Notes: generated by a model from the letters alone, not told the origin. A stretch of DNA of 64,000 nucleotides from Paragordius varius (GCA_964247055.1 OZ176059.1:3224001-3288000), one strand, 5' to 3'. Numbered from the stretch's first letter, positions 1 to 53,547 are shown. Numbers and translations: made by a program.

Positions 1-1599
1 ACCAGAATTTGTAGTTAAATTTTAGGAAGAAAACTTGATTTTATTGGAATTAAAAATTAATTTTGTTAAGAACAATATTCATTTAAAATACAGTAAAAAC
101 TGGCATTCTACTGGAAAAATTTCTATTTTTTAGTAAAATTTTCAAAGAAACCTTCACATTTACTGATAATATCACATACTTTTCAAATCTTAAGTAATAA
201 ATTTTAGTTTATATCTAAAGATTTAGGAAAATATCTAAATTTTTACTGTAAAAATTGCGAATTTTTAAAATTCATACTCATTTCTTAAGTTTTGAAATAA
301 TTCTAAGCAAAAACTCCATTTTTTTTCTAAAAAAAACAGAATAAATTTTTTTTTATTAGAAATAACTCTGAATAAGTTTTTTCATCTTTTGAGAATTATA
401 AATAAATTTTGTTAATATAAAAATTCATTTTTAAATAAGAAAAATTAAAAATAAATTAATTCTGTAAGAAATGTTAATTTTTTAAGTTTTTACTCATTTT
501 CCTGAAAATTTTTATATTATTTAAAATAGAGAATCCTCTCGTCAAATATATAAAATCTAATTTTTATTTTAAAACTTTAGAAAAATAATAATAATTTCTG
601 AATATTAAGATTTTTTTTCATTAAATATAGCATTTTTTCTATATTATTTTTTTTAATTAATTAATTTGAATTAAAGTGCTAATTTATGTTAATTAACTAT
701 ATTTATATTAATTTTTAATTATATTTCTATTATTTTTTAAAAAAATTTAAAATCATTTTATTTTTTTTATTATTTATTATATATATATATATATAACATT
801 TCTCCCATATTGTCTAAAATATGACATTCCTTGAAAACATATAACTAATTACAGAATAGGAATTAATATTCTTTTCTTTCCTTATGAAATGTTTGGCTCA
901 TAGATTCCCAATATATTATATTTTTTATTTTTTTAGATAAAATTAATTTTTATTATACAATAATTTATCAATTTTTTAAAACAGCAAAATATTTATAAAT
1001 CTTTTACTTATTGTCTCCTCCACAATTCTGAGTTAATAATTTGAGTTAAATAATATTAATTAATGTTATTAAAATATAAATGTTAAAATTTGTTTTTTTT
1101 AAATTTAATTATTTTTTAGGGAAAATTTAAAGAAAAATTTTATTTATTGTAATTCTTGATAATTTATCAAATTTTATCATAAATATTTACAAAAAACTCA
1201 TATTTTTTTAGTGAAAAATCAGAAAAAAAACTCAAATTTTGTTGAAAAAACTGAAAATTCTTCAACTTTTAACTCATTTATTCATGAATTATTCAGTAAA
1301 ATCATCAAAAAGTGTCAAAAATTCCAATTTTTAACAAAAATATTCATAATTTTAGTGTAAATTGTCTCAAAAATTCTTCATTTTAGTCAAAAAAAGAATG
1401 AAAATCAAGAATATTCATCATTCTTCAACAATATTCTTCATTCTTCTTTAGTAGTAGCTTAACATTTTCTTCATTCATTCATTCAATCTTGTATATGTGT
1501 GTGTGTCTCAACTAGAATCAACAACAAAAACCTTCTTCTCTCTCTTCTCTTCTTCTTCTTCTTCTTCATTTATTAATAGTAAGTGAGTGAATAAGTGTC

Positions 1600-1657
1600 C
1601 ATCACACACACATCAAATGAGTGATGACGTCATCACTCATTTGATGTGTGTGTGATG
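1600..1657. repeat. Perfect 58-bp loopless palindrome, arm type A (unit 1; also units 2 and 11)
   Basis: CATCACACACACATCAAATGAGTGATGAC|GTCATCACTCATTTGATGTGTGTGTGATG; the 29-nt arms are exact reverse complements. Confidence 0.98.
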
Positions 1658-3901
1658 TTGTTGTTGTTACACTTCTCTCTCACACATCACTCTTGTTGTA
1701 GCTGTTGTTGTAGTTGTTGTTGGTGGTGTTGCACATCTCTCTCTCTCTCTCTCATTCTCTCTCATATATGTATGTGATGAAATGAGTGTCATTTGTTATT
1801 TTTGATATTATATATATGTATATATAAAGAATGAAAAATGTTATTTTTGAATGAAAAATTGTTATTTTTGAATGAAATATTTTATTTTTTGTTGATTTTT
1901 TGATATTTTTTGAATATTTTTTTTAATTTTATTCTTATTTTTGAGTATTTTTTTAATTATTTTTGTTGAAATTTGACATTTTTGATGATTTTTTGAGGAT
2001 TTGATGAATATTTTGTGGATATTTTAGTTACTTTTTCTAGTTTTTACTCATTTTTTAATCAAAATTCTCATTTTTAAGTAGGAATAATTTAGTTTTTATT
2101 CAAAAAATTCTAAATTTGAGTAATTTTTACTCATTTTTTCTTATTTTTACTCATTTTTTGAAGAATTTTTGCTAAATTTCAAGAATAAATTCAATTTTTT
2201 GTCAAAAATATTCAAAAAAAATGAATTTTAACGAGTAAAAGTGTTAATTTTTCAAGATTTTTTTCATTTTTTCAAGAATTTCATCAAAAATTCAACTAAA
2301 AATTGATGTTTTATTCAAAAAATAAGAAAAATTCATCTTTTTAATCAAAAATTAGAGAAAAAAAGTTCATTTTTCAGTTAAAAATCACAAATTTTACTCA
2401 AAAAACTCAAAATTCTCCAACTTTTCATTCATTTATTCATGAATTATGAGAAAAACAAGCTTAAAAGTGTCAAAATTACCAATTTTCAACAATATTATTC
2501 ATTATTTCTAGTAAAATTGTCTCAAAAATCTTCATTCTTAGTCAAAAACAGTATAAAAAACAAGAATTTTCATCATTTCTTCAACAATATTCATTATTCT
2601 TCTTTAGTAGTAGCTTAACATTTTCTTCATTCATTCATTCAATCTTGTATATGTGTGTGTGTCTCAACTAGAATCAACAACAAAAACCTTCTTCTCTCTC
2701 TTCTCTTCTTCTTCTTCTTCTTCATTTATTAATAGTAAGTGAGTGAATAAGTGTCCATCACACACACATCAAATGAGTGATGACGTCATCACTCATTTGA
2801 TGTGTGTGTGATGTTGTTGTTGTTACACTTCTCTCTCACACATCACTCTTGTTGTAGCTGTTGTTGTAGTTGTTGTTGGTGGTGTTGCACATCTCTCTCT
2901 CTCTCTCTCATTCTCTCTCATATATGTATGTGATGAAATGAGTGTCATTTGTTATTTTTGATATTATATATATGTATATATAAAGAATGAAAAATGTTAT
3001 TTTTGAATGAAAAATTGTTATTTTTGAATGAAATATTTTATTTTTTGTTGATTTTTTGATATTTTTTGAATATTTTTTTTAATTTTATTCTTATTTTTGA
3101 GTATTTTTTTAATTATTTTTGTTGAAATTTGACATTTTTGATGATTTTTTGAGGATTTGATGAATATTTTGTGGATATTTTAGTTACTTTTTCTAGTTTT
3201 TACTCATTTTTTAATCAAAATTCTCATTTTTAAGTAGGAATAATTTAGTTTTTATTCAAAAAATTCTAAATTTGAGTAATTTTTACTCATTTTTTCTTAT
3301 TTTTACTCATTTTTTGAAGAATTTTTGCTAAATTTCAAGAATAAATTCAATTTTTTGTCAAAAATATTCAAAAAAAATGAATTTTAACGAGTAAAAGTGT
3401 TAATTTTTCAAGATTTTTTTCATTTTTTCAAGAATTTCATCAAAAATTCAACTAAAAATTGATGTTTTATTCAAAAAATAAGAAAAATTCATCTTTTTAA
3501 TCAAAAATTAGAGAAAAAAAGTTCATTTTTCAGTTAAAAATCACAAATTTTACTCAAAAAACTCAAAATTCTCCAACTTTTCATTCATTTATTCATGAAT
3601 TATGAGAAAAACAAGCTTAAAAGTGTCAAAATTACCAATTTTCAACAATATTATTCATTATTTCTAGTAAAATTGTCTCAAAAATCTTCATTCTTAGTCA
3701 AAAACAGTATAAAAAACAAGAATTTTCATCATTTCTTCAACAATATTCATTATTCTTCTTTAGTAGTAGCTTAACATTTTCTTCATTCATTCATTCAATC
3801 TTGTATATGTGTGTGTGTCTCAACTAGAATCAACAACAAAAACCTTCTTCTCTCTCTTCTCTTCTTCTTCTTCTTCTTCATTAATAATAATATTCTTCTT
3901 C

Positions 3902-3959
3902 ACAACAACACTCACCACAAGAGTGATGACGTCATCACTCTTGTGGTGAGTGTTGTTGT
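3902..3959. repeat. Perfect 58-bp loopless palindrome, arm type B (unit 3; related arms in units 4, 5, 9, 10, 12, 14, 15)
   Basis: ACAACAACACTCACCACAAGAGTGATGAC|GTCATCACTCTTGTGGTGAGTGTTGTTGT. Confidence 0.97.
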
Positions 3960-6900
3960 TGTTACATCTCTCTCTCACCACTCACTCTCTCACACACACA
4001 TACTAGTAGTTGTTGTTGTAGTTGTTGCTGCACATCTCTCTCTCTCATTTATGTATGTGGATGAAATGAGTGTAGATTTGTTATTTTTGTTATTTTTGTT
4101 ATTATATATATATGTATATATATTATATATAGAGAAGAAGAATTGTTATTTTTGAATGAAAAATAGGACAATTTTAAGAATTTTTAAATGAAAAATTGTT
4201 ATTTTTTGTGAAATTTTGTTAATTTTTTTATTTTTTGAGTATTTTTTGATATTTTTTGAATATTTTTTTTTAATTTTTCAATTGTTTTTGTTATTTTTTA
4301 TTATTTTTTTGGTTTATAAATGACATTTTTGAACAATTTTTGAATTTTTTGTGGATATTTTACTTATTTTTTGACATTTTTTCTAGTTTTTATTCATTTT
4401 TTGATTAAATTTCTCAATTTTGAGTGAGAAATAATTGATTCTTATTCAAAAAATTCTGAATTTTTGTAATTTTCACTTGATTTTTGAAGAATTTTTACTA
4501 AATTTCAAGAATAAATTCAATTTTTTGTCAAAAATGTTCAAAAAAAATGATTTTTATTGGATAAAAGTGTTAATTTTTCAAGATTTTAATCATTTTTTCA
4601 AGAATTTTTGATTAATTTCAACTAAAAATTCATTTTTTATTCAAAAAATAAGAAATAATCATCTTTTTAATCAAAAATTAGAGAAAAAAATGAATTTTTC
4701 TAGAAAAAAACTCAATTTTTAATGAAAAATAATCAAAATTCTCCAACTTTTCATTCATTTATTCATAAATTATGAGAAAAATAACCTTAAAAAGTAATCA
4801 AAATATCATTTTTAAGTGTAATATTCATAAATATTCATCAAAATTGTCTCAAAATCTTCATTTTTATTCAAAAAATGATGAAAATCAAGAATGACACTTA
4901 TTTATTCAACAATATTCTTCATTCTTCTTCTAGTAGTAGTGTAACATTTTCATCATTCATTCATTTATTCATGTATGTATGTGTTTGTGTCAACAAGAAT
5001 CAACAACAAAACCTTCTTCTCTCTCAACTCTTCTCTTCTTCTTCTTCATCACTCACAACAACAACACTCACCACAAGAGTGATGACGTCATCACTCTTGT
5101 GGTGAGTGTTGTTGTAGTTACACATTCTCTCTCTCTCTCTCTCTCCACTCTCACACACATCACTCTTAATTGTTGTTGTTGTAGTTGTTGTTGTACATGG
5201 TGCACAATGTGTGTCTCTCTCTCTCTCTCTCATTTATGAATGTTGATGAAATGAGTGATGGTTTGTTATTTTTGTTTGTTATTTTTATTCTTATATATAT
5301 ATGTATATATAATATATAGAGAAGAAGAATTGTTATTTTTGAATGAAAAATAGGACAATTTTAAGAATTTTTAAATGAAAAATTGTTATTTTTTGTGAAA
5401 TTTTGTTAATTTTTTTATTTTTTGAGTATTTTTTGATATTTTTTGAATATTTTTTTTTAATTTTTCAATTGTTTTTGTTATTTTTTATTATTTTTTTGGT
5501 TTATAAATGACATTTTTGAACAATTTTTGAATTTTTTGTGGATATTTTACTTATTTTTTGACATTTTTTCTAGTTTTTATTCATTTTTTGATTAAATTTC
5601 TCAATTTTGAGTGAGAAATAATTGATTCTTATTCAAAAAATTCTGAATTTTTGTAATTTTCACTTGATTTTTGAAGAATTTTTACTAAATTTCAAGAATA
5701 AATTCAATTTTTTGTCAAAAATGTTCAAAAAAAATGATTTTTATTGGATAAAAGTGTTAATTTTTCAAGATTTTAATCATTTTTTCAAGAATTTTTGATT
5801 AATTTCAACTAAAAATTCATTTTTTATTCAAAAAATAAGAAATAATCATCTTTTTAATCAAAAATTAGAGAAAAAAATGAATTTTTCTAGAAAAAAACTC
5901 AATTTTTAATGAAAAATAATCAAAATTCTCCAACTTTTCATTCATTTATTCATAAATTATGAGAAAAATAACCTTAAAAAGTAATCAAAATATCATTTTT
6001 AAGTGTAATATTCATAAATATTCATCAAAATTGTCTCAAAATCTTCATTTTTATTCAAAAAATGATGAAAATCAAGAATGACACTTATTTATTCAACAAT
6101 ATTCTTCATTCTTCTTCTAGTAGTAGTGTAACATTTTCATCATTCATTCATTTATTCATGTATGTATGTGTTTGTGTCAACAAGAATCAACAACAAAACC
6201 TTCTTCTCTCTCAACTCTTCTCTTCTTCTTCTTCATCACTCACAACAACAACACTCACCACAAGAGTGATGACGTCATCACTCTTGTGGTGAGTGTTGTT
6301 GTAGTTACACATTCTCTCTCTCTCTCTCTCTCCACTCTCACACACATCACTCTTAATTGTTGTTGTTGTAGTTGTTGTTGTACATGGTGCACAATGTGTG
6401 TCTCTCTCTCTCTCTCTCATTTATGAATGTTGATGAAATGAGTGATGGTTTGTTATTTTTGTTTGTTATTTTTATTCTTATATATATATGTATATATAAT
6501 ATATAGAGAAGAAGAATTGTTATTTTTGAATGAAAAATAGGACAATTTTAAGAATTTTTAAATGAAAAATTGTTATTTTTTGTGAAATTTTGTTAATTTT
6601 TTTATTTTTTGAGTATTTTTTGATATTTTTTGAATATTTTTTTTTAATTTTTCAATTGTTTTTGTTATTTTTTATTATTTTTTTGGTTTATAAATGACAT
6701 TTTTGAACAATTTTTGAATTTTTTGTGGATATTTTACTTATTTTTTGACATTTTTTCTAGTTTTTATTCATTTTTTGATTAAATTTCTCAATTTTGAGTG
6801 AGAAATAATTGATTCTTATTCAAAAAATTCTGAATTTTTGTAATTTTCACTTGATTTTTGAAGAATTTTTACTAAATTTCAAGAATAAATTCAATTTTTT

Positions 6901-9900
6901 GTCAAAAATGTTCAAAAAAAATGATTTTTATTGGATAAAAGTGTTAATTTTTCAAGATTTTAATCATTTTTTCAAGAATTTTTGATTAATTTCAACTAAA
7001 AATTCATTTTTTATTCAAAAAATAAGAAATAATCATCTTTTTAATCAAAAATTAGAGAAAAAAATGAATTTTTCTAGAAAAAAACTCAATTTTTAATGAA
7101 AAATAATCAAAATTCTCCAACTTTTCATTCATTTATTCATAAATTATGAGAAAAATAACCTTAAAAAGTAATCAAAATATCATTTTTAAGTGTAATATTC
7201 ATAAATATTCATCAAAATTGTCTCAAAATCTTCATTTTTATTCAAAAAATGATGAAAATCAAGAATGACACTCATTTCTTCAACAATTTCTTCATCATTC
7301 TTCTTTAGTAGTAGTAGTGTAACATTTTCATCATTCATTCATTCAATCATGTATGTGTTTGTGTCATTAACAAGAATCAACAACAAAACCTTCTTCTCTC
7401 TCAACTCTTCTCTTCTTCTTCTTCTTCATCTAATAATAATAATATTCTTCTTCACAACAACACTCACAACAAGAGTGATGACGTCATCACTCTTGTTGTG
7501 AGTGTTGTTGTTGAACACTCATCTCTCTCTCTCTCACACACACTCTCACCACTCACACATCATTCTTGTTGTTGTAGTTGTTGTTGTTGGTGGTGGTGCA
7601 CATCTCTCTCTCTCTCTCTCACTCATTTATGTATGTGATGAAATGAGTGATGTTTGTTATTTTTATTTGATATATATGTATATGTATATAGAGAAGAAGA
7701 ATGAAAAATGTTATTTTTGAATGAAACATTGTTATTTTTGGTATAATATTGTTATTTTTGAATGAAATGTAGGATAATTTTAAGAATTTTTTTTATTTTT
7801 TGTTGAATTTTGTTATTTTTTAATCATTTTTTTAATTTTATTCATATTTTTGAATATTTTTTGTCATTTTTTTTTAATTTTTCAATTGTTTTTGTTATTT
7901 TTTATTATTTTTTTTGGTATATAAATGACATTTTTGATGATTATATGAATATTTTGTGGATATTTTAGTTGTTTTTTCTCATTTTCTCTAGTTTTTACTC
8001 ATTTTTTAATTAAATTTATTCATTTTTAAGTAGAAATAATGGATTTTTCATTTGAAAAAATTGATTTTTACACTAAAATTTGCAAATTTTTCTTATTTTT
8101 ACTCATTTTTTCTCACTTTTTTTGACAATTTTTGATAAATTTCAACTAAAAATTCATTTTTTATTCAAAAATATTCAAAAAAAATGAAATTTATTGAATA
8201 AAAGTGTTAATTTTTCAAGATTTTATTCATTTTTTCAAGAATTTTTGATAAATTTCAACTGAAAATTCATATTTTATTCAAAAAATGATGAAAAACAAGA
8301 ATAATCATCTATTCTACAACATTATTCTTCATCATTCTTCTTAGTAGTAGTAGTGTAACATTTTCAGCATTCATTCATTCAATCTTGTATGTATGTGTGT
8401 GTCAACAAGAATCAACAACAAAAACCTTCTTCTCTCTCATCTCTTCTCTTCTTCTTCTTCTTCATCTAATAATAATAATATTCTTCTTCAACAACACTCA
8501 CAACAAGAGTGATGACGTCATCACTCTTGTGGTGAGTGTTGTTGTTGTAGTTACACACTCACTCCACTCACTCACACACTACTAGTTGTTGTTGTTGTAG
8601 TTGTTGTTGGACTATGTGGGTGTGTCTCTCATTCTCACTCATTTATATATGTATGTGGATGAAATGAGTGTCATTTGTTATTTTTGTTTGTTATTTTTGT
8701 TATTATTATTATATATGTATATGTATATAGAGAAGAAGAATTGTTATTTTTCAATGAAACATTGTTATTTTTGAATGAAAATTTGTTATTTTTGATTATT
8801 TTTTGAATATTTTTAATTTTTTTGAATAATTTTGAGTATTTTTTAATTATTTTTGTTATTTTTTCATTAAAATTAATATTTTTGAAGAATATTTTGGTTT
8901 AAAAATGACATTTTTGATGATTTTATGAATATTTTTACTATATTTTGGATATTTTATATTAATTTTTTGTAATTTTTACTCATTTTTAATTAAAATTCTC
9001 AATTTTGAGTGAGAAATAATTCATTTTTATTCAAAAAATACTAAATTTTCACAAATTTCACTTATTTTTTCAAGAATTTCTAGTAAATTTTAAAAAAAAT
9101 TCAATTTTTATTCAAAAATATTCAAAAAAAATGAATTTTAGCGAGTAAAAGTGTTAATTTTTTAAGATTTTAATCATTTTTTCAACAATTTTTCATAAAT
9201 TCCAACTAAAAATTCATTTTTTTGTCAAAAATTAGAGAAAAGAATGAATTTTCATTCAAAAAACTAGAAAAAAACTCAAATTTTAATGAAAAAACTCTAA
9301 ATTTTTCAATTTTTAACTCAATTATTCATGAATTTTCACAAAAAAACCTTAAAAAGTATCAAAAATGTCAATTTTCAACAAAAATATTCATAATTTCATT
9401 AAGATTGTCCAAAATTGTTGAGTAAATCATCAAAAAAAGTGTCAAAATTGTCATCTAAACACAGAAATAATCTTGTTTTTCATTAAAATTGTCTAAAAAA
9501 TGTCACTTTCAAGTGTAATATTCATAAATATTCATCAAAATTGTCTCAAAATGCTTCATTTTCATTCAAAAAATGATGAAAAACAAGAATAACACTCATT
9601 TCTACAACAATATTCTTCATTCTTCTTCTAGTAGTAGTTGTGTAACATTTTCTTCATTCATTCATTCTATCTTGTATATGTGTGTGTGTCTCAACTAGAA
9701 TCAACAACAAAAACCTTCTTCTCTCTCTACTCTTCTCTTCTTCTTCTTCTACTCTAATAATAATAATATTCTTCTTCTACAACAACACACACAACAAGAG
9801 TGATGACGTCATCACTCTTGTTGTGTGTGTAGTTGTTGTTGTTACTCTCTCTCTCTCACACACATACAAGAGTAGTGATGATGTTGGTTGTTGTAGTTGT

Positions 9901-12900
9901 GGTTGTGTATCTCTCTCTCATTTATGTATGTGATGGAATGAGAGATGGTTTGTTATTTTTGTTTGTTAATTTTGTTATTATATATATGTATATATAATAT
10001 ATAGAGAAGAAGAATGAAGAATGTTATTTTTGAATGAAACATTGTTATTTAAGAATGATATATGATATTTTTGGTTGAATTTTGTTAATTTTTAATATTT
10101 TTTTGTTGAAAATGATGATTTTTTGATTAAAATTATTAATTTTAAACATTTTTTGAATTTTGTTCATATTTTTGATGAATATTTTGTGGATTTTTTAATT
10201 ATTTTTGTTGAAATTTGACATTTTTGAAGATTTTATCTTGTTTCTGATGTTAAAAATAATATTTTTTTTAATTTTTTTGAGAGAAATGACAATTTTAAAC
10301 AAGATTTATTCATTTTTTATTCAAAAAATACTCAATTTTTACAAATTTCACTTTTTTTTGAAGAATTTCTAGTAAATTTTAAGAAAAAATTCAATTTTTA
10401 CTCAAAAATATTCAAAAAAAATGATTTTTTATCAAAAAAAGTGTCAATTTTTGAAATTTTTATTCATTTTTGTGACAATTTTAGAGAAATTTCAACTAAA
10501 AATTCAATTTTTTGTCAAAAACTAGAGAAAAAAATGAATTTTTGTTCAAAAAAAGTGTCAATTTTTGAAATTTTTGTTCAATTTTGTAAGAATTTCTCAA
10601 AAATTTTAAGAAAAAACATCCTTTCTGTTCAAAAAAGAATGAAAAATACATTTTTTATTCAAAATTCATAGAAAAAATATTCAATTTTAGTTAAAAATTA
10701 GAAAAAAACTCAAAATTCTTCAAATTTTAACTCATTTATTCATGAATTTTGAGTAAAATCATCTAAAATTGTATCAAAATTGTTATTTTCAACAAAAATA
10801 TTAATAATTCTAGTAAAATTGTTTCAAAAATCTTCATTTTAGTCAAAAAACAGTATAAAAACAAGAATTTCTTCATTTCTTCAACAATATTCATCATTCT
10901 TCTTAGTAGTAGTAGTGTAACATTTTCATCATTCATTCATTCAATCATGTATGTATGTGTGTGCGTCAACAAGAATCAACAACAAAAACCTTCTTCTCTC
11001 TCTACTCTTCTTCTTCTTCTTCAACTAATAATAATAGTAAGTGAGTAAGTGTCACTCACAACAACAACACTCACCACAAGAGTGATGACGTCATCACTCT
11101 TGTGGTGAGTGTTGTTGTGTATACATCTCTCTCTCTCACACACATCATTCTTGTAGTTGTTGTTGTAGTTGTTGCTGCTACACATCTTTCTCTCTCAATT
11201 GTGTATATGAATGAGATATATGTATTTGTTATTTTTGTTATTTTTATTATTATATATATATGTATATGTATATAGAGAAGAAGAATGAAGAATGATATTT
11301 TTGAATGAAACATTGTTATTTTTTGTTGAATAATAGGAAAATTTTAAGAATATTTTTTGTTGAAATTGAATATTTTTTTTAATTTTTTGAATTTTTTTGA
11401 TTATTTTTTTTAATTTTTTAATTAATTTTGTTACTTTTTATCATTTTTTTGGTTTTTAAATGACATTTTTGAACAATTTTTGAAGATTTGATGAATATTT
11501 TAGTTATTTTTTGTCTTTTTTTTGTACTATTTACTCATTTTTTAATAAAAAATTCAATTTTGACGATGAATTATTCATTTTTTATTCAAAAAATTCTGAA
11601 TTTTTGTAATTTTCACTTATTTTTTGAAGAATTTCTGCTCAATTTCAAGAGAAAATTCAGTTTTGACTCAAAAATAATGAATTTTATTCAAAAAAAGTGT
11701 CAATTTCTCAAATTTTTGTTGAATTTTGTAAGAATTTCTCAAAAATTTCATGAAAAAACATCATTTTTGTTCAAAAAATAAGAAAAATTCATCTTTTTAA
11801 TCAAAAAATCAAGAAAAAAATTCAATTTTTACTGAAAAAACACAAAATTCTTCAACTTTTCATTCATTTATTCAAGAATTATTCAGTAAAATCATCAAAA
11901 AATGTCAAAATTTTCAATTTAAAACATAAATATTCATTAATTTTCATTAAAAATGTCAAAAATTCTTCATTTTTATCAAAAAAATTGTCAAAATTGTCAT
12001 TTTTAAGTGTAATATTCATTAATTTTTATTAAAATTGTCTTAAAAATGTCATTTTTAGTCAAAAAACAGTATAAAAATCAAGAATGACACTCATTTATTC
12101 AACATTTTCTTCATTATTCTTGTTTAGTAGTAGTAGTGTAACATTCTCTTCATTCATTCATTCATTCATGTATATATGTGTTTGTGTCAACAAGAATCAA
12201 CAACAAAAACCTTCTTCTCTCTCTACTCTTCTTCTTCTTCTTCAACTAATAATAATAGTAAGTGAGTAAGTGTCACTCACAACAACAACACTCACCACAA
12301 GAGTGATGACGTCATCACTCTTGTGGTGAGTGTTGTTGTGTATACATCTCTCTCTCTCACACACATCATTCTTGTAGTTGTTGTTGTAGTTGTTGCTGCT
12401 ACACATCTTTCTCTCTCAATTGTGTATATGAATGAGATATATGTATTTGTTATTTTTGTTATTTTTATTATTATATATATATGTATATGTATATAGAGAA
12501 GAAGAATGAAGAATGATATTTTTGAATGAAACATTGTTATTTTTTGTTGAATAATAGGACAATTTTAAGAATTTTGTTGAATTTTTTGAGTATTTTTTAA
12601 TATTTTTTGAGTATTTTTTGATTTTTTTTGTTTAATAAAGAATATTTTTGTTGCAAAATGTCAATTTTTTTGTTTAAATTTGACAATTTTGAGAGTTTTT
12701 ACTTATTTTTGAAGAATTTTTCGATACATTTTAGGAGAAAATAACATTTTTATTCATGATATTCAAAATAAAATTCATTTTTACAGTAAAAATTGCAAAT
12801 ATTCTATAATTTTTGCTTGTTTTTACTCATTTTTACTCATTTTTTCTAGAATTATTGAATAATCACATGAAAATTGTCAATTTTTACTCAAAAATATTCA

Positions 12901-18900: not shown

Positions 18901-21900
18901 TTGTAGTTGAACAATGATTCTCTCTCTCATTTATGTATGTGGATGAAATGAGTGAAATGAGTGTCATTTGTTATTTTTGGTTTGTTATTTTTGTTATTAT
19001 ATATATGTATATGTATATATATAGAGAAGAATGAAAAATGTTATTTTTGAATGAAACATTATTATTTTTGGTGTAAAATTGTTATTTTTGAATATTTTTT
19101 TAATTTTTTTTTCATTTTTGAGTATTTTTTAATTGTTTTTGAGTATTTTTTTTAATTTTATTCATATTTTTGAGTATTTTTTGAATTATTTTTGTTGAAA
19201 TTTGACATTTTTGAAGATTTATTCTTGTTTTTAATGTTAAAAATGACATTTTTAAGTAGGAATAATTCAGTTTTTATTCTAAATAATTGATTTTTACAGT
19301 AAAATTAGCAAATTTTTACTTAATTTTGATTGTTTTTACTCATTTTGATTCATTTTTTTGACAATATTAGAAAAATAACAGAAAAAAACACAATTCTTAT
19401 TCAAAAATTGAAGAATAAATTCATTTTTATTGAAAAATTTCTCAATTTTGAAAGATTTTTCTCATTTCTGTGAGAATTTTTGATAAATTTCAACTAAAAA
19501 TTCATTTTTGTGTCAAAAATTTAAGAAAAAATTCATTTTTTCAGTGAAAAATTAGAAAAAAAACTAAATTTTAAGTGAAAAAACTGAAAATTCTTCAAAA
19601 ATTAAGCCATTTATTCATGAATTTTGACTAAAATAACCTTAAAAGTGTCAAAATATTCAATTTAACACAGAAATATTCATAAATTTAGTAAAAATGTGTC
19701 AAAAATGTCAATTTTAAGTGTAAAATTCATAAATTTAGTAAAAAGTGTCTTAAAAATGTTCATTTTTAGTCAAAAATCAGTATAAAAATCAAGAATATTC
19801 ATTATTCTTCAACAATATTCTTCATTCTTCTTTAGTAGTAGTAGTAGTGTATCATTTTCATCATTCATTCATTTAATCATGTATGTGTTTGTGTGTGTCA
19901 ACAAGAATCATCAACAAAAACCTTCTTCTCTCTCTTCTCTACTCTTCTTCTTCTTCATTAATTAACAAGTGTCCATCACAACTACACTCACAACAAGAGT
20001 GATGACGTCATCACTCTTGTTGTGAGTGTTGTAGTAGTTGTTACACACTCTTTCTCTCTCTCACACACATACACTGTAGAGTAGTGATGATGTTGTTGTT
20101 GGATGTGTAGCTACATCTCTCATTCTCTCTCATTTATGTATGTTGATGAAATGAGTGATGATTTGTTATTTTTGTACATATATATATATTTGTTATTTTT
20201 GTTATTATATATATGTATATATAATATAGAGAAGAAGAATTGTTATTTTTTGATTAAATAAAGACAATTTTAGTATTTTTTTATTTTATTCATTTTTTGA
20301 GTATTTTTAATTATTTTTTAAATATTTTTGAGTATTTTTTATCATTTTTTAATTATTTTTGTTAATTTTTATCATTTTTTTGGTTTATAAATGTCATTTT
20401 TGAACAATTTTTGAAGAAGTGATGAATATTTTGTGGATATTTTAGTCATTTTTTCTAGTTTTTACTCATTTTTGATTAAAATTGTTAATTTTGAGTGAGA
20501 AATAATTAATTTTTATTCAAAAAATTGGGAATTTTTGTAATTTTCACTCATTTTTTGAAGATTTTTTGCTAAATTTCAAGAAAAAATTCAATTTTTATTC
20601 AGAAATTTGAGAAAAAAATCATTTTTTCATCAAAAAAAGTGTTATTTTTTTAAATTTTATTCATTTTTTCAAGAATTTTTGATAATTTTCAACTAAAAAT
20701 TCATTTTTTAAATCAAAAATACAAGAAAAATGATCAATTTTAGTCAAAAATTAGAAAAAAAACTCAAATTTTGTTGAAAAAACTGAAAATTCTTGAAGTT
20801 TTAACTCTATTATTCATGAAAAATTAATAAAAATCATTAAAAAGTGTCAAAAATGTCATTTTAACACAGAAATATTCAAAAATTTAGTAAAAAAGTGTCA
20901 AAAATGTCAATTTTAATAGTAATATTCAGAAATTTAGTAAAAATTGTCTCAAAATCTTCATTTTTATTCAAAAAAAGAATGAAAATCAAGAATAACACTC
21001 ATTTCTTCAACAATATTCTTCATTCTTCTTCTAGTAGTAGTGAGTAACATTTACATCATTCATTCATTTAATCATGTATGTATGTGTGTGTCAACAAGAA
21101 TCAACAACAAAAACATTCTTCTCTCTCTTCTCTTCTTCTTCTTCTTCAACTAATAATAATAATAATATTCTTCTTCACAACAACACTCACAACAAGAGTG
21201 ATGACGTCATCACTCTTGTTGTGAGTGTTGTAGTAGTTGTTACACACTCTTTCTCTCTCTCACACACATACACTGTAGAGTAGTGATGATGTTGTTGTTG
21301 GATGTGTAGCTACATCTCTCATTCTCTCTCATACATGTATGTGATGAAATGAGTGATGTTTGTTATTTTTGTTTGTTATTTTTGTTTGTTATTTTTATTA
21401 TTATTATTATTATTATATTATAGAGAAGAAGAATGAATATTGTTATTTTTGAATGAAACATTGTTATTTTTGAATGAAATATAGGATAATTTTAAGAATT
21501 TTTTTTTATTTTTTTATTTTTTTGAATATTTTTGAATATTTTTTCTAATTTTATTGATTATTTTTTTTATTTTTTTAATTATTTTTGTTACTTTTTATCA
21601 TTTTTTTGATTTATAAATGACATTTTTGAACAATTTTTGAATATTTTGTGGATATTTGACTTATTTTTTGTCATTTTTTACTCATTTTTAATTAAAATTT
21701 CATTTTTATGTAGGAATAATTTAGTTTTTAATCAAAAAAATTCAAAATTTTAACATTTTTATTCATTTTTTTGACAATTTTTGTTAAATTTCAACTTAAA
21801 ATTCAATTTTTCAATCAAAATCTAGAGAAAATATTCATTTTTTACTGTAAAATTTCAAAAAAAAGTGAATTTTTAGTGAGAAAATTCTTAATTTTTCAAG

Positions 21901-22430
21901 ATTTTTGTTCATTTTTTCAAAATTATCGAGTAAAACATCAAAAAAAGTGTCAAAAATGTCATTTTCATACAAAAATATTCTTGTATTTCATAAAAATTGT
22001 CCAAAAATCTTCTTATTCATTCAAAAATTAGAGAAAAATTATCATTTTTAGTGAAAAAATAGAAAAAAAACTCAAATTTTACTCAAAAAACTGAAAATTC
22101 TTCAAAAATTAACCCATTTATTCATGAATTTTGACTATAATAACCTTAAAAGTGTCCAAAATGTCAATTTAAAGCATAAATATTCATTAATTTAGTAATA
22201 TTGTCTCAAAAATCCTCATTTTTATTCAAAAATAAGTGTAAAACAAGAATATTTAGTATTTCTTCAACAATATTCATCATTCTTCTTTAGTAGTAGTGTA
22301 ACAATCTTCATTCATTCATTCAATCATGTATGTGTGTATGTGTGTCAACAAGAAACAACAACAAAAACCTTCTTCTCTCTCAATTCTTCTCTTCTTCTTC
22401 TTCTACTCTACTAATAATAATATTCTTCTT

Positions 22431-22490
22431 CACAACCACACACACAACAAGAGTGATGACGTCATCACTCTTGTTGTGTGTGTGGTTGTG
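22431..22490. repeat. Perfect 60-bp loopless palindrome, arm type D (unit 18; identical in unit 19)
   Basis: CACAACCACACACACAACAAGAGTGATGAC|GTCATCACTCTTGTTGTGTGTGTGGTTGTG. Confidence 0.97.
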
Positions 22491-25400
22491 TTACACACTC
22501 ATCTCTCTCTCTCACACACACACATCACACATACACTAGTAGTTGTTGTTGTTGGTGGTGGTGGTGCACAACTCTCTCTCTCATTTATGTATGTGAATGA
22601 AATGAGTGTCATTTGTTATTTTTGTTTGTTATTTTTATTATTATTATTATTATTATATTATAGAGAAGAAGAATGAATATTGTTATTTTTGAATGAAACA
22701 TTGTTATTTTTGAATGAAATATAGGATAATTTTAAGAATTTTTTTTTATTTTTTTATTTTTTTGAATATTTTTGAATATTTTTTCTAATTTTATTGATTA
22801 TTTTTTTTATTTTTTTAATTATTTTTGTTACTTTTTATCATTTTTTTGATTTATAAATGACATTTTTGAACAATTTTTGAATATTTTGTGGATATTTGAC
22901 TTATTTTTTGTCATTTTTTACTCATTTTTAATTAAAATTTCATTTTTATGTAGGAATAATTTAGTTTTTAATCAAAAAAATTCAAAATTTTAACATTTTT
23001 ATTCATTTTTTTGACAATTTTTGTTAAATTTCAACTTAAAATTCAATTTTTCAATCAAAATCTAGAGAAAATATTCATTTTTTACTGTAAAATTTCAAAA
23101 AAAAGTGAATTTTTAGTGAGAAAATTCTTAATTTTTCAAGATTTTTGTTCATTTTTTCAAAATTATCGAGTAAAACATCAAAAAAAGTGTCAAAAATGTC
23201 ATTTTCATACAAAAATATTCTTGTATTTCATAAAAATTGTCCAAAAATCTTCTTATTCATTCAAAAATTAGAGAAAAATTATCATTTTTAGTGAAAAAAT
23301 AGAAAAAAAACTCAAATTTTACTCAAAAAACTGAAAATTCTTCAAAAATTAACCCATTTATTCATGAATTTTGACTATAATAACCTTAAAAGTGTCCAAA
23401 ATGTCAATTTAAAGCATAAATATTCATTAATTTAGTAATATTGTCTCAAAAATCCTCATTTTTATTCAAAAATAAGTGTAAAACAAGAATATTTAGTATT
23501 TCTTCAACAATATTCATCATTCTTCTTTAGTAGTAGTGTAACAATCTTCATTCATTCATTCAATCATGTATGTGTGTATGTGTGTCAACAAGAAACAACA
23601 ACAAAAACCTTCTTCTCTCTCAATTCTTCTCTTCTTCTTCTTCTACTCTACTAATAATAATATTCTTCTTCACAACCACACACACAACAAGAGTGATGAC
23701 GTCATCACTCTTGTTGTGTGTGTGGTTGTGTTACACACTCATCTCTCTCTCTCACACACACACATCACACATACACTAGTAGTTGTTGTTGTTGGTGGTG
23801 GTGGTGCACAACTCTCTCTCGCATTTATGTATGTGAATGAAATGAGTGTCATTTGTTATTTTTGTTTGTTATTTTTATTATTATTATTATTATTATATTA
23901 TATAGAAGAAGAATGAATATTGTTATTTTTGAATGAAAAATAGGACAATTTTAAATATTTTTTTTTATTTTTTGAATATTTTTTAATTTTTTTTAATCAT
24001 TTTATTATTTTTATTCATATTTTTGAGTATTTTTTGAATTATTTTTGTTGAAATTTGTTATTTTTGATGCTTTTTTGAGGATTTGATGAATATTTTGTGG
24101 ATATTTTAGTTACTTTTTCTAGTTTTTACTCATTTTTTCTAATTTTTACTCATTTAACTGAGAATTTTTGCTAAATTTCAAGAATAAATTCAATTTTTTG
24201 TCAAAAATATTCAAAAAAATGATTTTTTCATCAAAAAAAGTGTTAATTTTTGAATTTTTCACTCATTTTTTCAAGAATTATTTATAAATTTTAACTGAAA
24301 ATTCATTTTTTATTCAATATTTGTTAAAAAAATTTATTTTTTTAGTAAAAATTAGAAAAAAAACTCAATTTTTACTGAAAAATTTCAAAATTCTCCATAT
24401 ATTCACTCATTTTTCAAGAATTAATCATAAAAATTAACAGAAAAACTCAATTTTTAATGAAAAAAACTCAAAATTCTTCAAAAATTAACCCATTTATTCA
24501 TGAATTTTGACTAAAATAACCTTAAAAGTGTCAAAAATGTCAGTTTAACACAGAAATAATCTTGTTTTTCATTAGAATTGTCTCAAAATTGTCACTTTTA
24601 AACAAAATTATTCATATTTTTCAATAAAAATCCTCAAAATTCTTCATTTTTATTCAAAAAATGATGAAAAACAAGAATATTCATTATTTCTTCAACATTA
24701 CTCTTCATTCTTCTTTAGTAGTAGTAATGTAACATTTTCATCATTCATTCATTTAATCATGTATGTGTGTATGTGTGTCAACAAGAATCAACAACAAAAA
24801 CCTTCTTCTCTCTCTTCTTCTTCTTCTTCTTCAACTAATAATAATAATATTCCTCTTCAACAACTACACTCACCACAAGAGTGATGACGTCATGACTCTT
24901 GTTGTGTGTGTTGTTGTTGTTACACACTCACACTTCTTTCTCTCTCTCTCCACTCACACACACATACACTAGTAGTTGTTGTTGCTGCACATCTCTCTCT
25001 CACACTCATTTGTATGTGATGAAATGAGTGATGTTTGTTATTTTTTATTTGTTATTTTTGTTATTATTATTATTATTATTATATATATGTATATAGAAGA
25101 AGAATGAAAAATTGTTATTTTTGAATGAAAAATAGGACAATTTTAAATATTTTTTTTTATTTTTTGAATATTTTTTAATTTTTTTTAATCATTTTATTAT
25201 TTTTATTCATATTTTTGAGTATTTTTTGAATTATTTTTGTTGAAATTTGTTATTTTTGATGCTTTTTTGAGGATTTGATGAATATTTTGTGGATATTTTA
25301 GTTACTTTTTCTAGTTTTTACTCATTTTTTCTAATTTTTACTCATTTAACTGAGAATTTTTGCTAAATTTCAAGAATAAATTCAATTTTTTGTCAAAAAT

Positions 25401-28400
25401 ATTCAAAAAAATGATTTTTTCATCAAAAAAAGTGTTAATTTTTGAATTTTTCACTCATTTTTTCAAGAATTATTTATAAATTTTAACTGAAAATTCATTT
25501 TTTATTCAATATTTGTTAAAAAAATTTATTTTTTTAGTAAAAATTAGAAAAAAAACTCAATTTTTACTGAAAAATTTCAAAATTCTCCATATATTCACTC
25601 ATTTTTCAAGAATTAATCATAAAAATTAACAGAAAAACTCAATTTTTAATGAAAAAAACTCAAAATTCTTCAAAAATTAACCCATTTATTCATGAATTTT
25701 GACTAAAATAACCTTAAAAGTGTCAAAAATGTCAGTTTAACACAGAAATAATCTTGTTTTTCATTAGAATTGTCTCAAAATTGTCACTTTTAAACAAAAT
25801 TATTCATATTTTTCAATAAAAATCCTCAAAATTCTTCATTTTTATTCAAAAAATGATGAAAAACAAGAATATTCATTATTTCTTCAACATTACTCTTCAT
25901 TCTTCTTTAGTAGTAGTAATGTAACATTTTCATCATTCATTCATTTAATCATGTATGTGTGTATGTGTGTCAACAAGAATCAACAACAAAAACCTTCTTC
26001 TCTCTCTTCTTCTTCTTCTTCTTCAACTAATAATAATAATATTCCTCTTCAACAACTACACTCACCACAAGAGTGATGACGTCATGACTCTTGTTGTGTG
26101 TGTTGTTGTTGTTACACACTCACACTTCTTTCTCTCTCTCTCCACTCACACACACATACACTAGTAGTTGTTGTTGCTGCACATCTCTCTCTCACACTCA
26201 TTTGTATGTGATGAAATGAGTGATGTTTGTTATTTTTTATTTGTTATTTTTGTTATTATTATTATTATTATTATATATATGTATATAGAAGAAGAATGAA
26301 AAATTGTTATTTTTGAATGAAAAATAGGACAATTTTAAATATTTTTTTTTATTTTTTGAATATTTTTTAATTTTTTTTAATCATTTTATTATTTTTATTC
26401 ATATTTTTGAGTATTTTTTGAATTATTTTTGTTGAAATTTGTTATTTTTGATGCTTTTTTGAGGATTTGATGAATATTTTGTGGATATTTTAGTTACTTT
26501 TTCTAGTTTTTACTCATTTTTTCTAATTTTTACTCATTTAACTGAGAATTTTTGCTAAATTTCAAGAATAAATTCAATTTTTTGTCAAAAATATTCAAAA
26601 AAATGATTTTTTCATCAAAAAAAGTGTTAATTTTTGAATTTTTCACTCATTTTTTCAAGAATTATTTATAAATTTTAACTGAAAATTCATTTTTTATTCA
26701 ATATTTGTTAAAAAAATTTATTTTTTTAGTAAAAATTAGAAAAAAAACTCAATTTTTACTGAAAAATTTCAAAATTCTCCATATATTCACTCATTTTTCA
26801 AGAATTAATCATAAAAATTAACAGAAAAACTCAATTTTTAATGAAAAAAACTCAAAATTCTTCAAAAATTAACCCATTTATTCATGAATTTTGACTAAAA
26901 TAACCTTAAAAGTGTCAAAAATGTCAGTTTAACACAGAAATAATCTTGTTTTTCATTAGAATTGTCTCAAAATTGTCACTTTTAAACAAAATTATTCATA
27001 TTTTTCAATAAAAATCCTCAAAATTCTTCATTTTTATTCAAAAAATGATGAAAAACAAGAATATTCATTATTTCTTCAACATTACTCTTCATTCTTCTTT
27101 AGTAGTAGTAATGTAACATTTTCATCATTCATTCATTTAATCATGTATGTGTGTATGTGTGTCAACAAGAATCAACAACAAAAACCTTCTTCTCTCTCTT
27201 CTTCTTCTTCTTCTTCAACTAATAATAATAATATTCCTCTTCAACAACTACACTCACCACAAGAGTGATGACGTCATGACTCTTGTTGTGTGTGTTGTTG
27301 TTGTTACACACTCACACTTCTTTCTCTCTCTCTCCACTCACACACACATCACTCTTGTTGTAGTTGTTGTTGTTGCACATCTCTCTCTCTCTCACACACA
27401 TCAATTGTAAATGTGATGAAATGAGTGACTTTTGTTACTATATGTATTTGTTATTTTTGTTATTATTATTATTATTATATATATATGTATATATAAGAAG
27501 AATAAAAATTGTTATTTTTTGATTAAATAAAGACAATTTTAGGATTATTTTTTGTTGAGAAATGACATTTTTTGAATATTTTTTTATTTTTATTCATATT
27601 TTTGAATATTTTTTATCATTTTTTAATTGTTTTTGTTAATTTTTATCATTTTTTTGGTTTAAAAATGACATTTTTGAACATTTTTTGAATATTTTGTGGA
27701 TATTTTACTTATTTTTTATCATTTTTTCTCTTTTTTGCTCATTTTTCAATGATAATTCACAATTTTGACGATGAATAATTCATTTTTTATTTGAAAAATT
27801 CTAAATTTTTGTAATTTTTGATTATTTTTTCGAGTTTTTGTTCATTTTTTTGACAATTTTTCATGAATTTTAACAAAAAATTCATTTTTTATTCATAAAT
27901 TAGAGAAAAAAATGAATTTTTAAGTGAAAAATAAGAAAAAAAACTCAATTTTTAGTGAAAAAACTCAAATTTCATCAACTTTTTATTCATTTATTCATGA
28001 ATTATTCAGTAAAATCATTAAAAAGTGTCAAAATTGTCAATTTTCAACAAAAATATTCATAAATTTTCATTAAAAATGTCAAAAATTCTTCATTTTTATC
28101 AAAAAAATTGTCAAAATTGTCATTTTTAAGTGTAATATTGATGAATTTTCATTAGAATAACCTTAAAAAGTGTAAAAATTGTTAATTTTCATCAAACATA
28201 TTCATAATTCTAGTATAATTGTCTCAAAAAATCTTCATTTTTAGTCAAAAAACAGTATAAAAAACAAGAATGACACTCATTTCTACAACAATATTCTTCA
28301 TTCTTCTTTAGTAGTAGTGTAACATTTACATCATTCATTCATTCAATCATGTATATGTGTATGTCTCAACAAGAATCAACAACAAAAAACATTCTTCTCT

Positions 28401-29546
28401 CTCATCTCAACTCTTCTCTTCTTCTTCTTCTTCATCTAATAATAATAATATTCTTCTTCACAACAACACTCACAACAAGAGTGATGACGTCATCACTCTT
28501 GTTATGAGTGTTGTTGCACTCTCTCTCTCACTCACACACTAGTTGTTGTTGTAGTTGTTGGTGAAGAATGAATGTGTGTCTCTCTCTCATATATGTATGT
28601 GATGAAATGAGTGTCATTTGTTATTTTTGATTTGTTATTTTTGTTATTATTATATATATGTATATGTATATAGAGAAGAAGAAGGAAAATTGTTATTTTT
28701 GAATGTAACATTGTTATTTTTGTGTAATATTGTTATTTTTTGAATATTTTTTTAATTTTGTTATTTTTTGAGTATTTTTTATTATTTTTTGAATATTTTT
28801 TTTATTTTAAAAATATATTTTAGTAATAAAATTCAATTTTTTTGTTGAAAAATGACAATTTTATAATATTTTCTTAATTTTATTCATATTTTTGAACATT
28901 TTTAATTATTTTTTTGTTGAAAAATAATATTTTTTGATGATTTTTTTGTTAAAAAATGACATTTTTGATGATTTATTCTTGTTTTTAATGTTAAAAATGA
29001 TATTTTTTTGATTTTTTCAAGATTTGATGAATGTTTTGTGGTTTTAGTTATTTTTGATGAAATTTGACATTGAAGATTTATTCTTGTTTTTTGATGTTAA
29101 AAATGTTATTTTTCTTGATTTTTCGAGAGAATTGACAATTTTAATTAATTTATTACTTATATTTTTTAGTTAATTCTCATTTTATGACATTTATAAAATA
29201 TCAGAAAAAAACTTAATTTTTCTTTCTCCAAATTTAGATTTTTATTGAAAAAATAATATTAAAATTTAATTTTTTTATGAAATTCATTTTTAGTGAAAAA
29301 TTAGAGAATAAAATTTTTTAAGTACAAATCTAATATTACTTCATTTATACAGTAAAATTATCAAATTATCACTAATTTCTTTTAACTCATTTTTACTCAT
29401 TTTTTTAATAATTTTTGATAAAGTTTTAAGAAAGAATAAAATTTTATTTAAAAAATTCAAAAAAAATTATTTTTATTCAAAAAAACTGATAATTTCTCCA
29501 ATTTTTACTTATTTTTGTAAGATTGCTGGAAAATTTTAATTAAAAA

Positions 29547-30880: not shown

Positions 30881-30911
<31 letters not shown>

Positions 30912-31866: not shown

Positions 31867-32009
31867 AAGCATTGGAAGACATGGTTTTATAACTGATGGC
31901 ACATTCACAACCCATAGCTTTCTGAACCGTTATAAGCAAGTCTGAACCACCAGCCCCAAATTTCTCACTCACATCCTTCTTGAGGTCAGGATTTAAAGCT
32001 CCATCAAGT
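31865..32009 (-). CDS. eIF5A: eIF5A coding exon 4 (terminal)
   Basis: Acceptor TTTATTTTAG; completes the split AG|A Arg codon; the only copy that continues through ITVQKAMG to TAA. Confidence 0.92.
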
Positions 32010-36407: not shown

Positions 36408-36419
36408 TTTTTGATTGGT

Positions 36420-36440
36420 CTGCTAAAAATTAAAAAATTT
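36420..36440 (-). promoter_or_regulatory. Tandem NAGNAG splice acceptor (TTTTTAG CAG) 12-15 nt upstream of the eIF5A ATG
   Basis: The minus strand reads TTTTTAATTTTTAG CAG ACCAATCAAAAAATG. This implies an upstream 5' UTR intron or a trans-splice site. Confidence 0.55.

Positions 36441-53484: not shown

Positions 53485-53547
<63 letters not shown>

Follow-up and report, generated by a model that had tools for sequence, protein, structure and literature searches.

A satellite array in Paragordius varius with spacerless palindromes whose arms vary together around a constant CRE-like core

Perfect palindromes are kept in the mitochondrial DNA of hairworms, and an active conversion mechanism has been proposed for them (PMC6649704). 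The authors inferred conversion from arm to arm, possibly through template switching, and no function has been proven. These "coding palindromes", probably of the same lineage of animals, resemble the nuclear array described here in being perfect inverted repeats with no excess of imperfect intermediates. They differ in lying inside protein genes, having loops, reaching 284 bp and lacking a constant centre, whereas the palindromes of the array are non-coding, spacerless and 58–60 bp long, occur once per monomer and share a constant 20-bp core.

Template switching homogenises and expands the arms of inverted repeats, including those of dimeric transcription factor sites (PMC13100816, PMC8604942), and the compensatory changes that it yields span several bases with no wobble intermediates (PMC8794818). 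The template-switched inverted repeats of yeast promoters in these three papers share several properties with the array: arm identity gained in one step, growth from the opposite flank, compensatory changes of several bases without wobble, and a palindromic transcription factor site as a possible seed. Each known case concerns one locus compared across species and usually spans less than 30 bp in total, while the array offers 23 paralogous copies in one genome, with arms of 29–30 nt.

Two further groups share parts of this layout. The protelomerase targets N15 telRL (56 bp) and PY54 pal (42 bp) have ten central bases in common (PMC3540006), and, like the palindromes here, are spacerless inverted repeats of some 40–60 bp with an identical, conserved centre and differing outer arms, so the likeness to telRL drawn in an earlier note on this DNA holds. 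They differ in belonging to bacterial phages, in being accompanied by a Tel enzyme gene and in having replicated junctions that are head-to-head; the array is head-to-tail, and no such gene was seen in the window (the whole 64-kb stretch of DNA that was analysed). Satellites with dyads or a CENP-B box, and centromeric non-B DNA (PMC5889037), also have monomers that evolve fast except for a short conserved box of protein type, a cruciform-capable dyad or both. Those dyads are shorter than 10 bp, are not perfect over 58 bp and have no reported co-variation of arms.

Large palindromes of sex chromosomes undergo gene conversion between arms of 10 kb to megabases, which are separated by spacers and converted by homologous recombination. 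As in the array, concerted evolution of the two arms goes along with divergence between copies or species, but that pathway needs longer arms than the 29 nt found here. New in the present array are the mirrored changes, the old units carrying identical 58-mers, the core as the least variable part and the extension of palindromes by copying of a flank.

The array consists of non-coding satellite DNA in head-to-tail units (Table 1). 23 copies of ATGACGTCAT were found, against a chance expectation of 0.01, all within 1624–28493 and with centres 1,034–1,332 bp apart, in agreement with the recurrence of ca. 1.2 kb noticed earlier. The span first given to the array, 1600–28520, is too narrow. Both ends of the array are AT-rich filler with no palindrome, and 22 units are co-linear and all direct. 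Except for a few recent duplicates, units are 72–83% identical in pairwise comparison, with a mean pi of 0.25 across the unit; the sequence around the palindromes does drift, as had been described, and the units are, by their divergence, old. There is no conserved ORF in the unit, no frame stays open across units, and no Pfam matches, protein homologues, tRNA or Rfam genes were found for the array. Because 31-mers from 11000–17000 recur in the sequencing runs of three studies, under three organism labels, the array DNA is real. It forms a 28-kb island between genes, unlike a centromere-sized block, and the surrounding genome is very AT-rich.

Table 1. Positions of the array, its palindromes, its constant upstream box and its motif fields within the 64-kb window
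Feature	Position	Strand	Arm mismatches	Remarks
1.2-kb satellite array	1170..29580	+		ca. 23.3 head-to-tail units; unit homology starts at ca. 1172–1219 and fades at ca. 29580
Palindrome 1	1600..1657	.	0	allele A, perfect 29+29
Palindrome 2	2756..2813	.	0	allele A, perfect
Palindrome 3	3902..3959	.	0	allele B, perfect
Palindrome 4	5058..5115	.	0	allele B, perfect; 32-nt arms if 1 mismatch is counted
Palindrome 5	6245..6302	.	0	allele B, perfect
Palindrome 6	7454..7511	.	0	allele B' (both arms A for C, position 15), perfect
Palindrome 7	8488..8545	.	2	left B' / right B
Palindrome 8	9779..9836	.	1	CACACAC variant
Palindrome 9	11061..11118	.	0	allele B, perfect
Palindrome 10	12282..12339	.	0	allele B, perfect
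Palindrome 11	13545..13602	.	0	allele A, perfect; flank similarity to units 1–2 only 78%
Palindrome 12	14869..14926	.	1	allele B; mismatch at position 29
Palindrome 13	16201..16258	.	3	left B' / right B
Palindrome 14	17475..17532	.	0	allele B, perfect; left linker GTGTCCATC common to allele A
Palindrome 15	18788..18845	.	0	allele B, perfect
Palindrome 16	19978..20035	.	2	B' + 2 one-sided changes
Palindrome 17	21177..21234	.	1	B' + 1 one-sided change
Palindrome 18	22431..22490	.	0	allele C, perfect 30+30
Palindrome 19	23671..23730	.	0	allele C, perfect 30+30
Palindrome 20	24860..24917	.	4	arms of two alleles + core G->C
Palindrome 21	26052..26109	.	4	copy of palindrome 20
Palindrome 22	27244..27301	.	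4	copy of palindrome 20
Palindrome 23	28460..28517	.	2	B' + 2 one-sided changes
Upstream constant box TCAACAAGAATCAACAACAAAAACC, first copy	1508..1532	+		96–155 bp left of centre, 23/23 units
Upstream box, starts of copies 2–12	2664, 3820, 4990, 6177, 7367, 8402, 9691, 10966, 12187, 13418, 14779	+		
Upstream box, starts of copies 13–22	16119, 17360, 18673, 19898, 21091, 22345, 23585, 24778, 25970, 27162	+		
Upstream box, last copy (23rd)	28366..28390	+		
T/G-rich TTTTTGA motif field, example from unit 1	1778..2078	+		+150..+450 from each centre
A/C-rich TCAAAAA motif field, example from unit 1	2150..2534	+		ca. +500 to -250 of next centre

Thirteen of the 23 units have perfect palindromes of 58–60 nt, and the other ten have between one and four mismatches. 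The arms measure 29 nt (30 nt in units 18 and 19) with no spacer, consistent with the inverted repeat of up to ca. 60 bp reported before. Symmetry ends sharply at ±29/30, and beyond this the flanks score no better inverted than direct. Identical 58-mers are embedded in flanks that are only 70–85% alike. No complex perfect palindromes were found elsewhere in the 64-kb window, outside the array, and the window therefore gives no sign of a genome-wide process that perfects palindromes.

The two arms of a palindrome change together. In 11 of the 29 arm pairs the change was two-sided, and no pair had one-sided changes alone. Pairing is strictly Watson-Crick – one cell in 435 was G:U, and the remaining unmatched cells were true mismatches. 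None of 500 shuffles reached the observed co-variation, and structures slid by 1–3 columns scored far lower; when right arms were shuffled among the 12 distinct palindromes, the observed match occurred in 0.2% of trials (p=0.002). The paired changes, together with the near-absence of G:U, indicate that the mirroring was copied at the level of DNA.

Alleles A and B have in common a left linker, GTGTCCATCAC, and a right flank, (GTT)n. The right arm of allele A has GTGATG, the mirror of CATCAC in the left linker, while ACAACA, in the left arm of allele B, mirrors the (GTT)n tract on the right. Copying thus ran both ways across the dyad, and each allele appears, from this reconstruction of their ancestry, to have lengthened the palindrome by adding the mirror image of the flank on the other side. 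That both allele families have 29-nt arms hints at a constraint on length, unpredicted by a purely mutational process, though with two independent boundaries only.

The central 20-mer, GAGTGATGACGTCATCACTC, is unchanged in 20 of the 23 units, as counted earlier, and the exceptions (units 20–22) are one recent triplication with a single G to C change in the right arm. Its pi of 0.006 is the lowest of all 1,139 20-column segments of the unit (median 0.256); the arms are at ca. 0.15 and the linkers at 0.3–0.5. The CRE octamer TGACGTCA, also recognised in the earlier note, lies intact inside ATGACGTCAT in all 23 units. The core is constant, but it is not the only constant part of the unit, as had been supposed: the upstream box TCAACAAGAATCAACAACAAAAACC is present in every unit as well (pi 0.012), and conservation is also good over ca. 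230 bp upstream of the palindrome. The core is conserved beyond what homogenisation of the array would give, and this, with the co-variation of the arms, agrees with the active upkeep of the site that had been proposed. Judged by this variation, the core and the upstream box are under sequence-specific constraint. As the alleles of the outer arms are highly dissimilar even within one array, no sequence-specific protein can read them, and a protein site, if there is one, would be confined to the core.

The interpretation that we favour, with a probability of about 0.5, is that of a non-coding satellite in which a CRE-like core is constrained, probably by a dimeric protein, and in which the flanks are made and kept palindromic by template switching from arm to arm. 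Such a repeat would have two layers. In the first, the central 20 bp with TGACGTCA, plus the upstream box, would be held by sequence-specific constraint, the likeliest cause being a dimeric DNA-binding protein (of the bZIP/CREB-ATF type) or a similar factor on every monomer. A site for a bZIP protein accounts for some 10–14 bp, and the core has 20. In the second layer, the outer 19–20 nt of each arm would be free in sequence but copied from arm to arm as DNA, either by template switching on the nascent or opposite strand during replication ("quasipalindrome correction"), a process that would be read here from its footprint, or by repair of a mismatched hairpin. A change in one arm would then be erased or mirrored, and copies of the opposite flank could lengthen the palindrome. 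Its growth to 58 bp may have started from the short palindromic site of the protein. As ten of the 23 palindromes are imperfect, correction would be slow, or in competition with exchange between units.

The alternative that fares best, though it is rather unlikely, is a neutral satellite, in which template switching gave rise to the palindrome incidentally and the constancy of core and box reflects no more than local differences in mutation or homogenisation: the core and box would be complex sequence set among AT-rich or microsatellite filler that is prone to slippage, or breaks at the palindrome would have started conversion. The variable parts of the unit are indeed microsatellite-like or made of 10–31-bp subrepeats, and another repeat family, the second of the window, likewise has one short complex box that stays constant amid drifting filler. 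The correlation between similarity matrices of adjacent segments is also lowest immediately to the right of the palindrome (r=0.27), where exchanges that break at this point would place the minimum. However, other parts of the unit that are not repetitive vary 30-fold more than the core (pi 0.18–0.3), and a conversion gradient starting at the centre cannot explain why the arms and linkers are more variable than a box 100–150 bp away. The central ACGT, moreover, would be unpaired in a hairpin and hence uncorrectable, yet it never varies.

It is improbable that the site is bound by a protein for cutting, resolution or replication, with a nuclease, recombinase or initiator recognising the core or the extruded cruciform. 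Programmed breaks, 1.2-kb circles or local origins would on that model spread and homogenise the array. The constant centre and looser symmetric arms of the 58-bp palindrome are laid out like telRL and pal, the skew changes sign at the palindrome block in the direction expected of an origin or a divergent promoter, and duplication borders adjoin the palindrome. Against this, the ends of the array do not coincide with palindromes, head-to-tail units are not junctions of hairpin-ended replicons, and the search for recombinase (tyrosine recombinase included), protelomerase, Rep and transposase genes, part of which the earlier note had suggested, found no such ORF in the 64-kb window.

A source of hairpin RNA, also raised in the earlier note, is no better placed. 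The satellite would be transcribed, its perfect stems of 27–29 bp would be processed by Dicer to siRNA or miRNA-like RNA, and pairing would be selected. Single-strand folding (-31 to -34 kcal/mol, z ca. -11), sub-threshold matches to miRNA precursor models and the similar arm length of different alleles would fit. The scarcity of G:U and the true mismatches are unlike RNA-selected stems, though, a perfect stem with a 4-nt loop is unlike Drosha substrates, and a constant core with free arms is left unexplained. No Rfam family reached its gathering threshold (best match 35 bits, gathering score 100), and array words occurred in no RNA run among those searched, a weak result, as short RNAs are easily missed.

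The junction of two terminal inverted repeats (TIRs) is inherently a spacerless palindrome. The monomer could accordingly be a small DNA transposon or foldback-like element amplified via a circle or tandem junction, its right TIR abutting its left. In its two AT-rich halves the unit has motif fields that seem to be inverted relative to each other, with subrepeats of 10, 20 and 31 bp, a possible likeness to foldback elements: the TTTTTGA field has 135 TTTTTGA to 0 TCAAAAA, a GC skew of +0.6 to +0.9 and subrepeat periods of 10–11, 20–21 and 31 bp, and the two fields compared in inverted orientation score 45–66 (shuffles 28±4) with no sharp second axis. This origin is nevertheless very improbable. 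The array starts and stops in filler rather than in half-palindromes, the other 34 kb of the window have no solo copies or single arms, a transposase is absent from the window, and dead TIRs would decay independently after amplification, whereas new variants here are mirrored. A concatemer of small linear hairpin-ended replicons, suggested earlier, was rejected, for it predicts head-to-head neighbours, while all 22 units are head-to-tail, their flanks are not inverted copies and the window has no enzyme gene.

In this satellite one can see how the perfection of a short palindrome is preserved in a genome, with arms that vary between copies and match within a copy. More speculatively, hairworm nuclei, like their mitochondria, may perfect and extend short palindromes unusually actively, and the array may have recorded this 23 times around a protein-bound CRE-like seed; the regularly spaced, cruciform-capable sites might be points of breakage or exchange that amplify, homogenise and disperse the array. 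If so, the repeat would maintain itself through its own secondary structure.

There are 23 copies of ATGACGTCAT in the window, against 0.01 expected, and all of them lie within one tandem array of ca. 1.2-kb units, numbered 1–23 from left to right, with 1,034–1,332 bp between neighbouring sites. Each site is the exact midpoint (centre) of an inverted repeat without a spacer, with arms of 29 nt except in units 18 and 19, where they are 30 nt. Of the 23 palindromes, 13 are perfect, and the remaining ones have 1–4 mismatches. In single-strand folding, the perfect sites reach −31 to −34 kcal/mol (z about −11) and the allele with four mismatches −17.5 kcal/mol. The core, meaning the central 20-mer GAGTGATGACGTCATCACTC, does not differ among 20 of the 23 units; the other three form a single recent triplication that carries a G to C change on the right arm. 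The palindromes are real and statistically solid, and both the regular spacing of spacerless sites and the invariant core, as an earlier note had described them, are borne out by these counts. The edge of the symmetry is sharp: in the flanks from ±30 to ±250, inverted alignments scored no higher than direct, mirror or complement ones. A larger decayed palindrome around the 58-mer is ruled out over that range, the only inverted similarity being between distant AT-rich fields.

The satellite array is old. A few recent duplications aside (units 1–2, 3–5, 17–18 and 19–21), identity between units is 72–83%, and unit homology gives way to AT-rich filler at both ends. The array is no assembly artefact, since 31-mers from 11000–17000 are present in runs from three studies with three organism labels, the listed runs all being contigs. 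The window as a whole is very AT-rich (16–30% GC), which is compatible with the published hairworm GC content of 26.9%.

The array is a non-coding satellite. No reading frame is conserved across units, and a coding exon or micro-exon was rejected on that account; the frame that crosses the centre has 22–126 open codons, depending on the unit. The ORFs spanning the palindrome block had no Pfam family, no homologue and no exact product on record. There were no tRNA genes, and no Rfam family reached threshold, so an SL RNA, snRNA or 5S-type tandem gene was also rejected. A sigma-70 promoter scan gave chance-level matches, which are irrelevant in an animal.

Features of the window, with the allelic versions of the outer palindrome arms
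Feature	Position or units	Strand	Description
Satellite array	about 1170 to about 29580		extent of unit homology
Palindrome sites	1624–28493		extent of ATGACGTCAT copies
Allele A	units 1, 2 and 11		outer arm CATCACACACACATCAAAT
Allele B	7 units		outer arm ACAACAACACTCACCACAA
Allele B'			position 15 = A on both arms
Allele C	units 18 and 19
Shorter (TA)n tracts	30881–30908
eIF5A gene	31868–36422	minus	exon ORFs 36228–36422 and 35383–35532 match Pfam IF5A-like_N
eIF5A exon-like echoes	31868–32086, 32283–32483, 33364–33714		one 19-residue stretch recurring
Short tandem arrays	39582–40890, 44059–44930		periods 100–169 bp, TTCACCCTT / AAGGGTGAA motif
Second repeat field	41381–62997	+ (all copies)	box GTAGTATATACTCGCTGTAATATTA, 45 copies, about 200 bp apart
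(TA)28	53487–53542		only other long perfect palindrome in window

Each unit has two fields of opposite composition. Between +150 and +450 past a centre, T and G are abundant on the top strand, with a GC skew of +0.6 to +0.9 and 135 TTTTTGA motifs against 0 TCAAAAA; the reverse motif predominates between about +500 and position −250 of the following centre. The two fields are alike in inverted orientation (scores of 45–66, against 28±4 in shuffles) and have subrepeats of 10–11, 20–21 and 31 bp. The second switch between them is gradual and has no palindrome. Tracts of (CTT)n, (CT)n, (CA)n and (GTT)n flank the palindrome block. The observed/expected ratio of CpG is 0.13 in the array (1170–29580; GpC 0.20) against 1.06 in 29580–64000, and 23 of the 43 CpGs in the array are at the palindrome centres. 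Several duplication borders lie within about 80 bp of a palindrome, and when the unit-to-unit similarity of neighbouring 120-bp segments was compared, agreement was weakest about +40 from the centre (r = 0.27, against 0.39–0.84 elsewhere) – a weak hint that exchanges may break just right of the palindrome.

Identical 58-mers are found within flanks that are 70–85% alike (78% for palindromes 1 and 11). Among 16 representative units, pi was 0.000–0.013 in the central ±10 nt, 0.14–0.18 at arm positions 11–30, 0.29–0.48 in the linkers bordering the arms, and 0.013–0.045 in a box some 100 bp upstream. The core ranked first of 1,139 windows across the unit, with a pi of 0.006 against a median of 0.256, which upholds the earlier claim that it is kept beyond the drift of the array; CAACAAAAACCTTCTTCTCT ranked second (0.012). 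All 23 units have the upstream box (TCAACAAGAATCAACAACAAAAACC), each time on the + strand, and its distance varies from 96 to 155 bp. Arms and linkers are bracketed by two constant islands, a profile that a conversion gradient spreading from a central break cannot produce. Symmetrisation alone cannot keep a sequence constant, and no unit varies in the central ACGT, the part that a hairpin would leave unpaired; core and box are therefore read as sequence-constrained. The simplest source of that constraint would be a putative binding protein. The core contains a perfect CRE octamer, and its palindromic form would suit a dimeric protein. No sequence-specific protein reads the outer arms, since very different arm alleles coexist in one array.

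There are 12 distinct combinations of left and right arm. When 16 representative sites were aligned without gaps, changes on both sides were found in 11 of the 29 arm pairs and one-sided changes alone in none; 96.6% of all cells were paired, with G:U in 1 of 435. None of 500 shuffles matched any of five co-variation measures, structures slid by 1–3 columns scored far lower, and shuffling the right arms among distinct units gave p = 0.002. The matching is strictly Watson–Crick and the arm changes are mostly A:T to C:G or the reverse, and so the mirroring was made on DNA, not selected in RNA. Exchange between units has no way of transferring a left-arm change to the opposite arm within one unit, so the mirroring must come from a process inside the palindrome.

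The direction of copying can be read from alleles A and B, which have a common outer context: a left linker ending in GTGTCCATCAC and a right (GTT)n tract. Allele A has GTGATG inserted ahead of (GTT)n on its right arm, a mirror of the left linker, while allele B has ACAACA(AC) inserted past CATC on its left arm, a mirror of the right tract. Since both insertions mirror the opposite flank, each lengthened the palindrome by copying that flank; the ancestral state behind the two extensions we infer from sequence. Inverted repeats that expand by template switching have been described as bearing just such copies of the opposite flank (PMC13100816, PMC8604942, PMC8794818). The palindromes with different alleles on their two arms (units 7, 13 and 20–22) resemble the products of allelic exchange at the centre.

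Our reading, with a probability of about 0.5, is a non-coding satellite with a two-layer palindrome, in which template switching is the best-supported mechanism. In the first layer, the CRE-like core would be held under constraint by putative protein binding; in the second, the arms would be kept mirror-matched by DNA-level copying within the palindrome, through template switching. That DNA-level copying keeps the arms matched is, taken alone, the likelier statement. The satellite is of known kinds: satellite DNA and inverted repeats maintained by template switching.

A source of hairpin RNA had also been proposed. Generic miRNA-precursor models touch the hairpin at a relaxed threshold, far under gathering scores, but the near absence of wobble pairs, the loop of 4 nt and, as a weak point, the lack of any RNA run among the listed runs with array words disfavour it. 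Cut, resolution or replicon function at the palindrome centres is improbable: copies at replicated hairpin-telomere junctions are joined head-to-head, whereas the satellite units are all head-to-tail, and the recombinase-type gene that the earlier note suggested searching for has no ORF in the window, where the sole recognisable gene is eIF5A. The likeness to phage hairpin telomeres is fair as regards layout, with N15 telRL at 56 bp, PY54 pal a 42-bp perfect palindrome, and ten central bases identical in both (PMC3540006).

Metagenomes gave 7 matches to the core 20-mer, all unrelated (GC 38–51%, arms of 10–15 nt), and viral sequences none. No paper was found on nuclear satellites of hairworms, nor on any satellite built around TGACGTCA. 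The window has no other complex perfect palindromes, with only (TA)n tracts outside the array, and a genome-wide palindrome excess is not apparent within it. A second, unrelated repeat field has a box, including the 10-bp palindrome AGTATATACT, that is constant amid drifting AT-rich filler in the style of the 1.2-kb satellite. The TTCACCCTT / AAGGGTGAA arrays have opposite orientations either side of 40 kb, where GC skew flips from −0.35 to +0.39.

Both the CRE-like core, which is constant, and the box upstream of it can be tested as candidate targets of a satellite-binding protein. What lets perfect palindromes persist, and how paired changes come about without unfit intermediates, are long-standing problems, mostly studied at single loci between species. 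The array is a natural experiment with dozens of diverged paralogous copies within one genome – perfect palindromes, palindromes with a different allele on each arm and extended alleles – so that the rates and directions of arm-to-arm copying are directly measurable. Perfect palindromes are known from hairworm mitochondrial DNA, where an active conversion of the arms, possibly by template switching, has been proposed (PMC6649704). If the genome is that of a hairworm, the array would be a nuclear counterpart to the unexplained mitochondrial 'coding palindromes' of the phylum.
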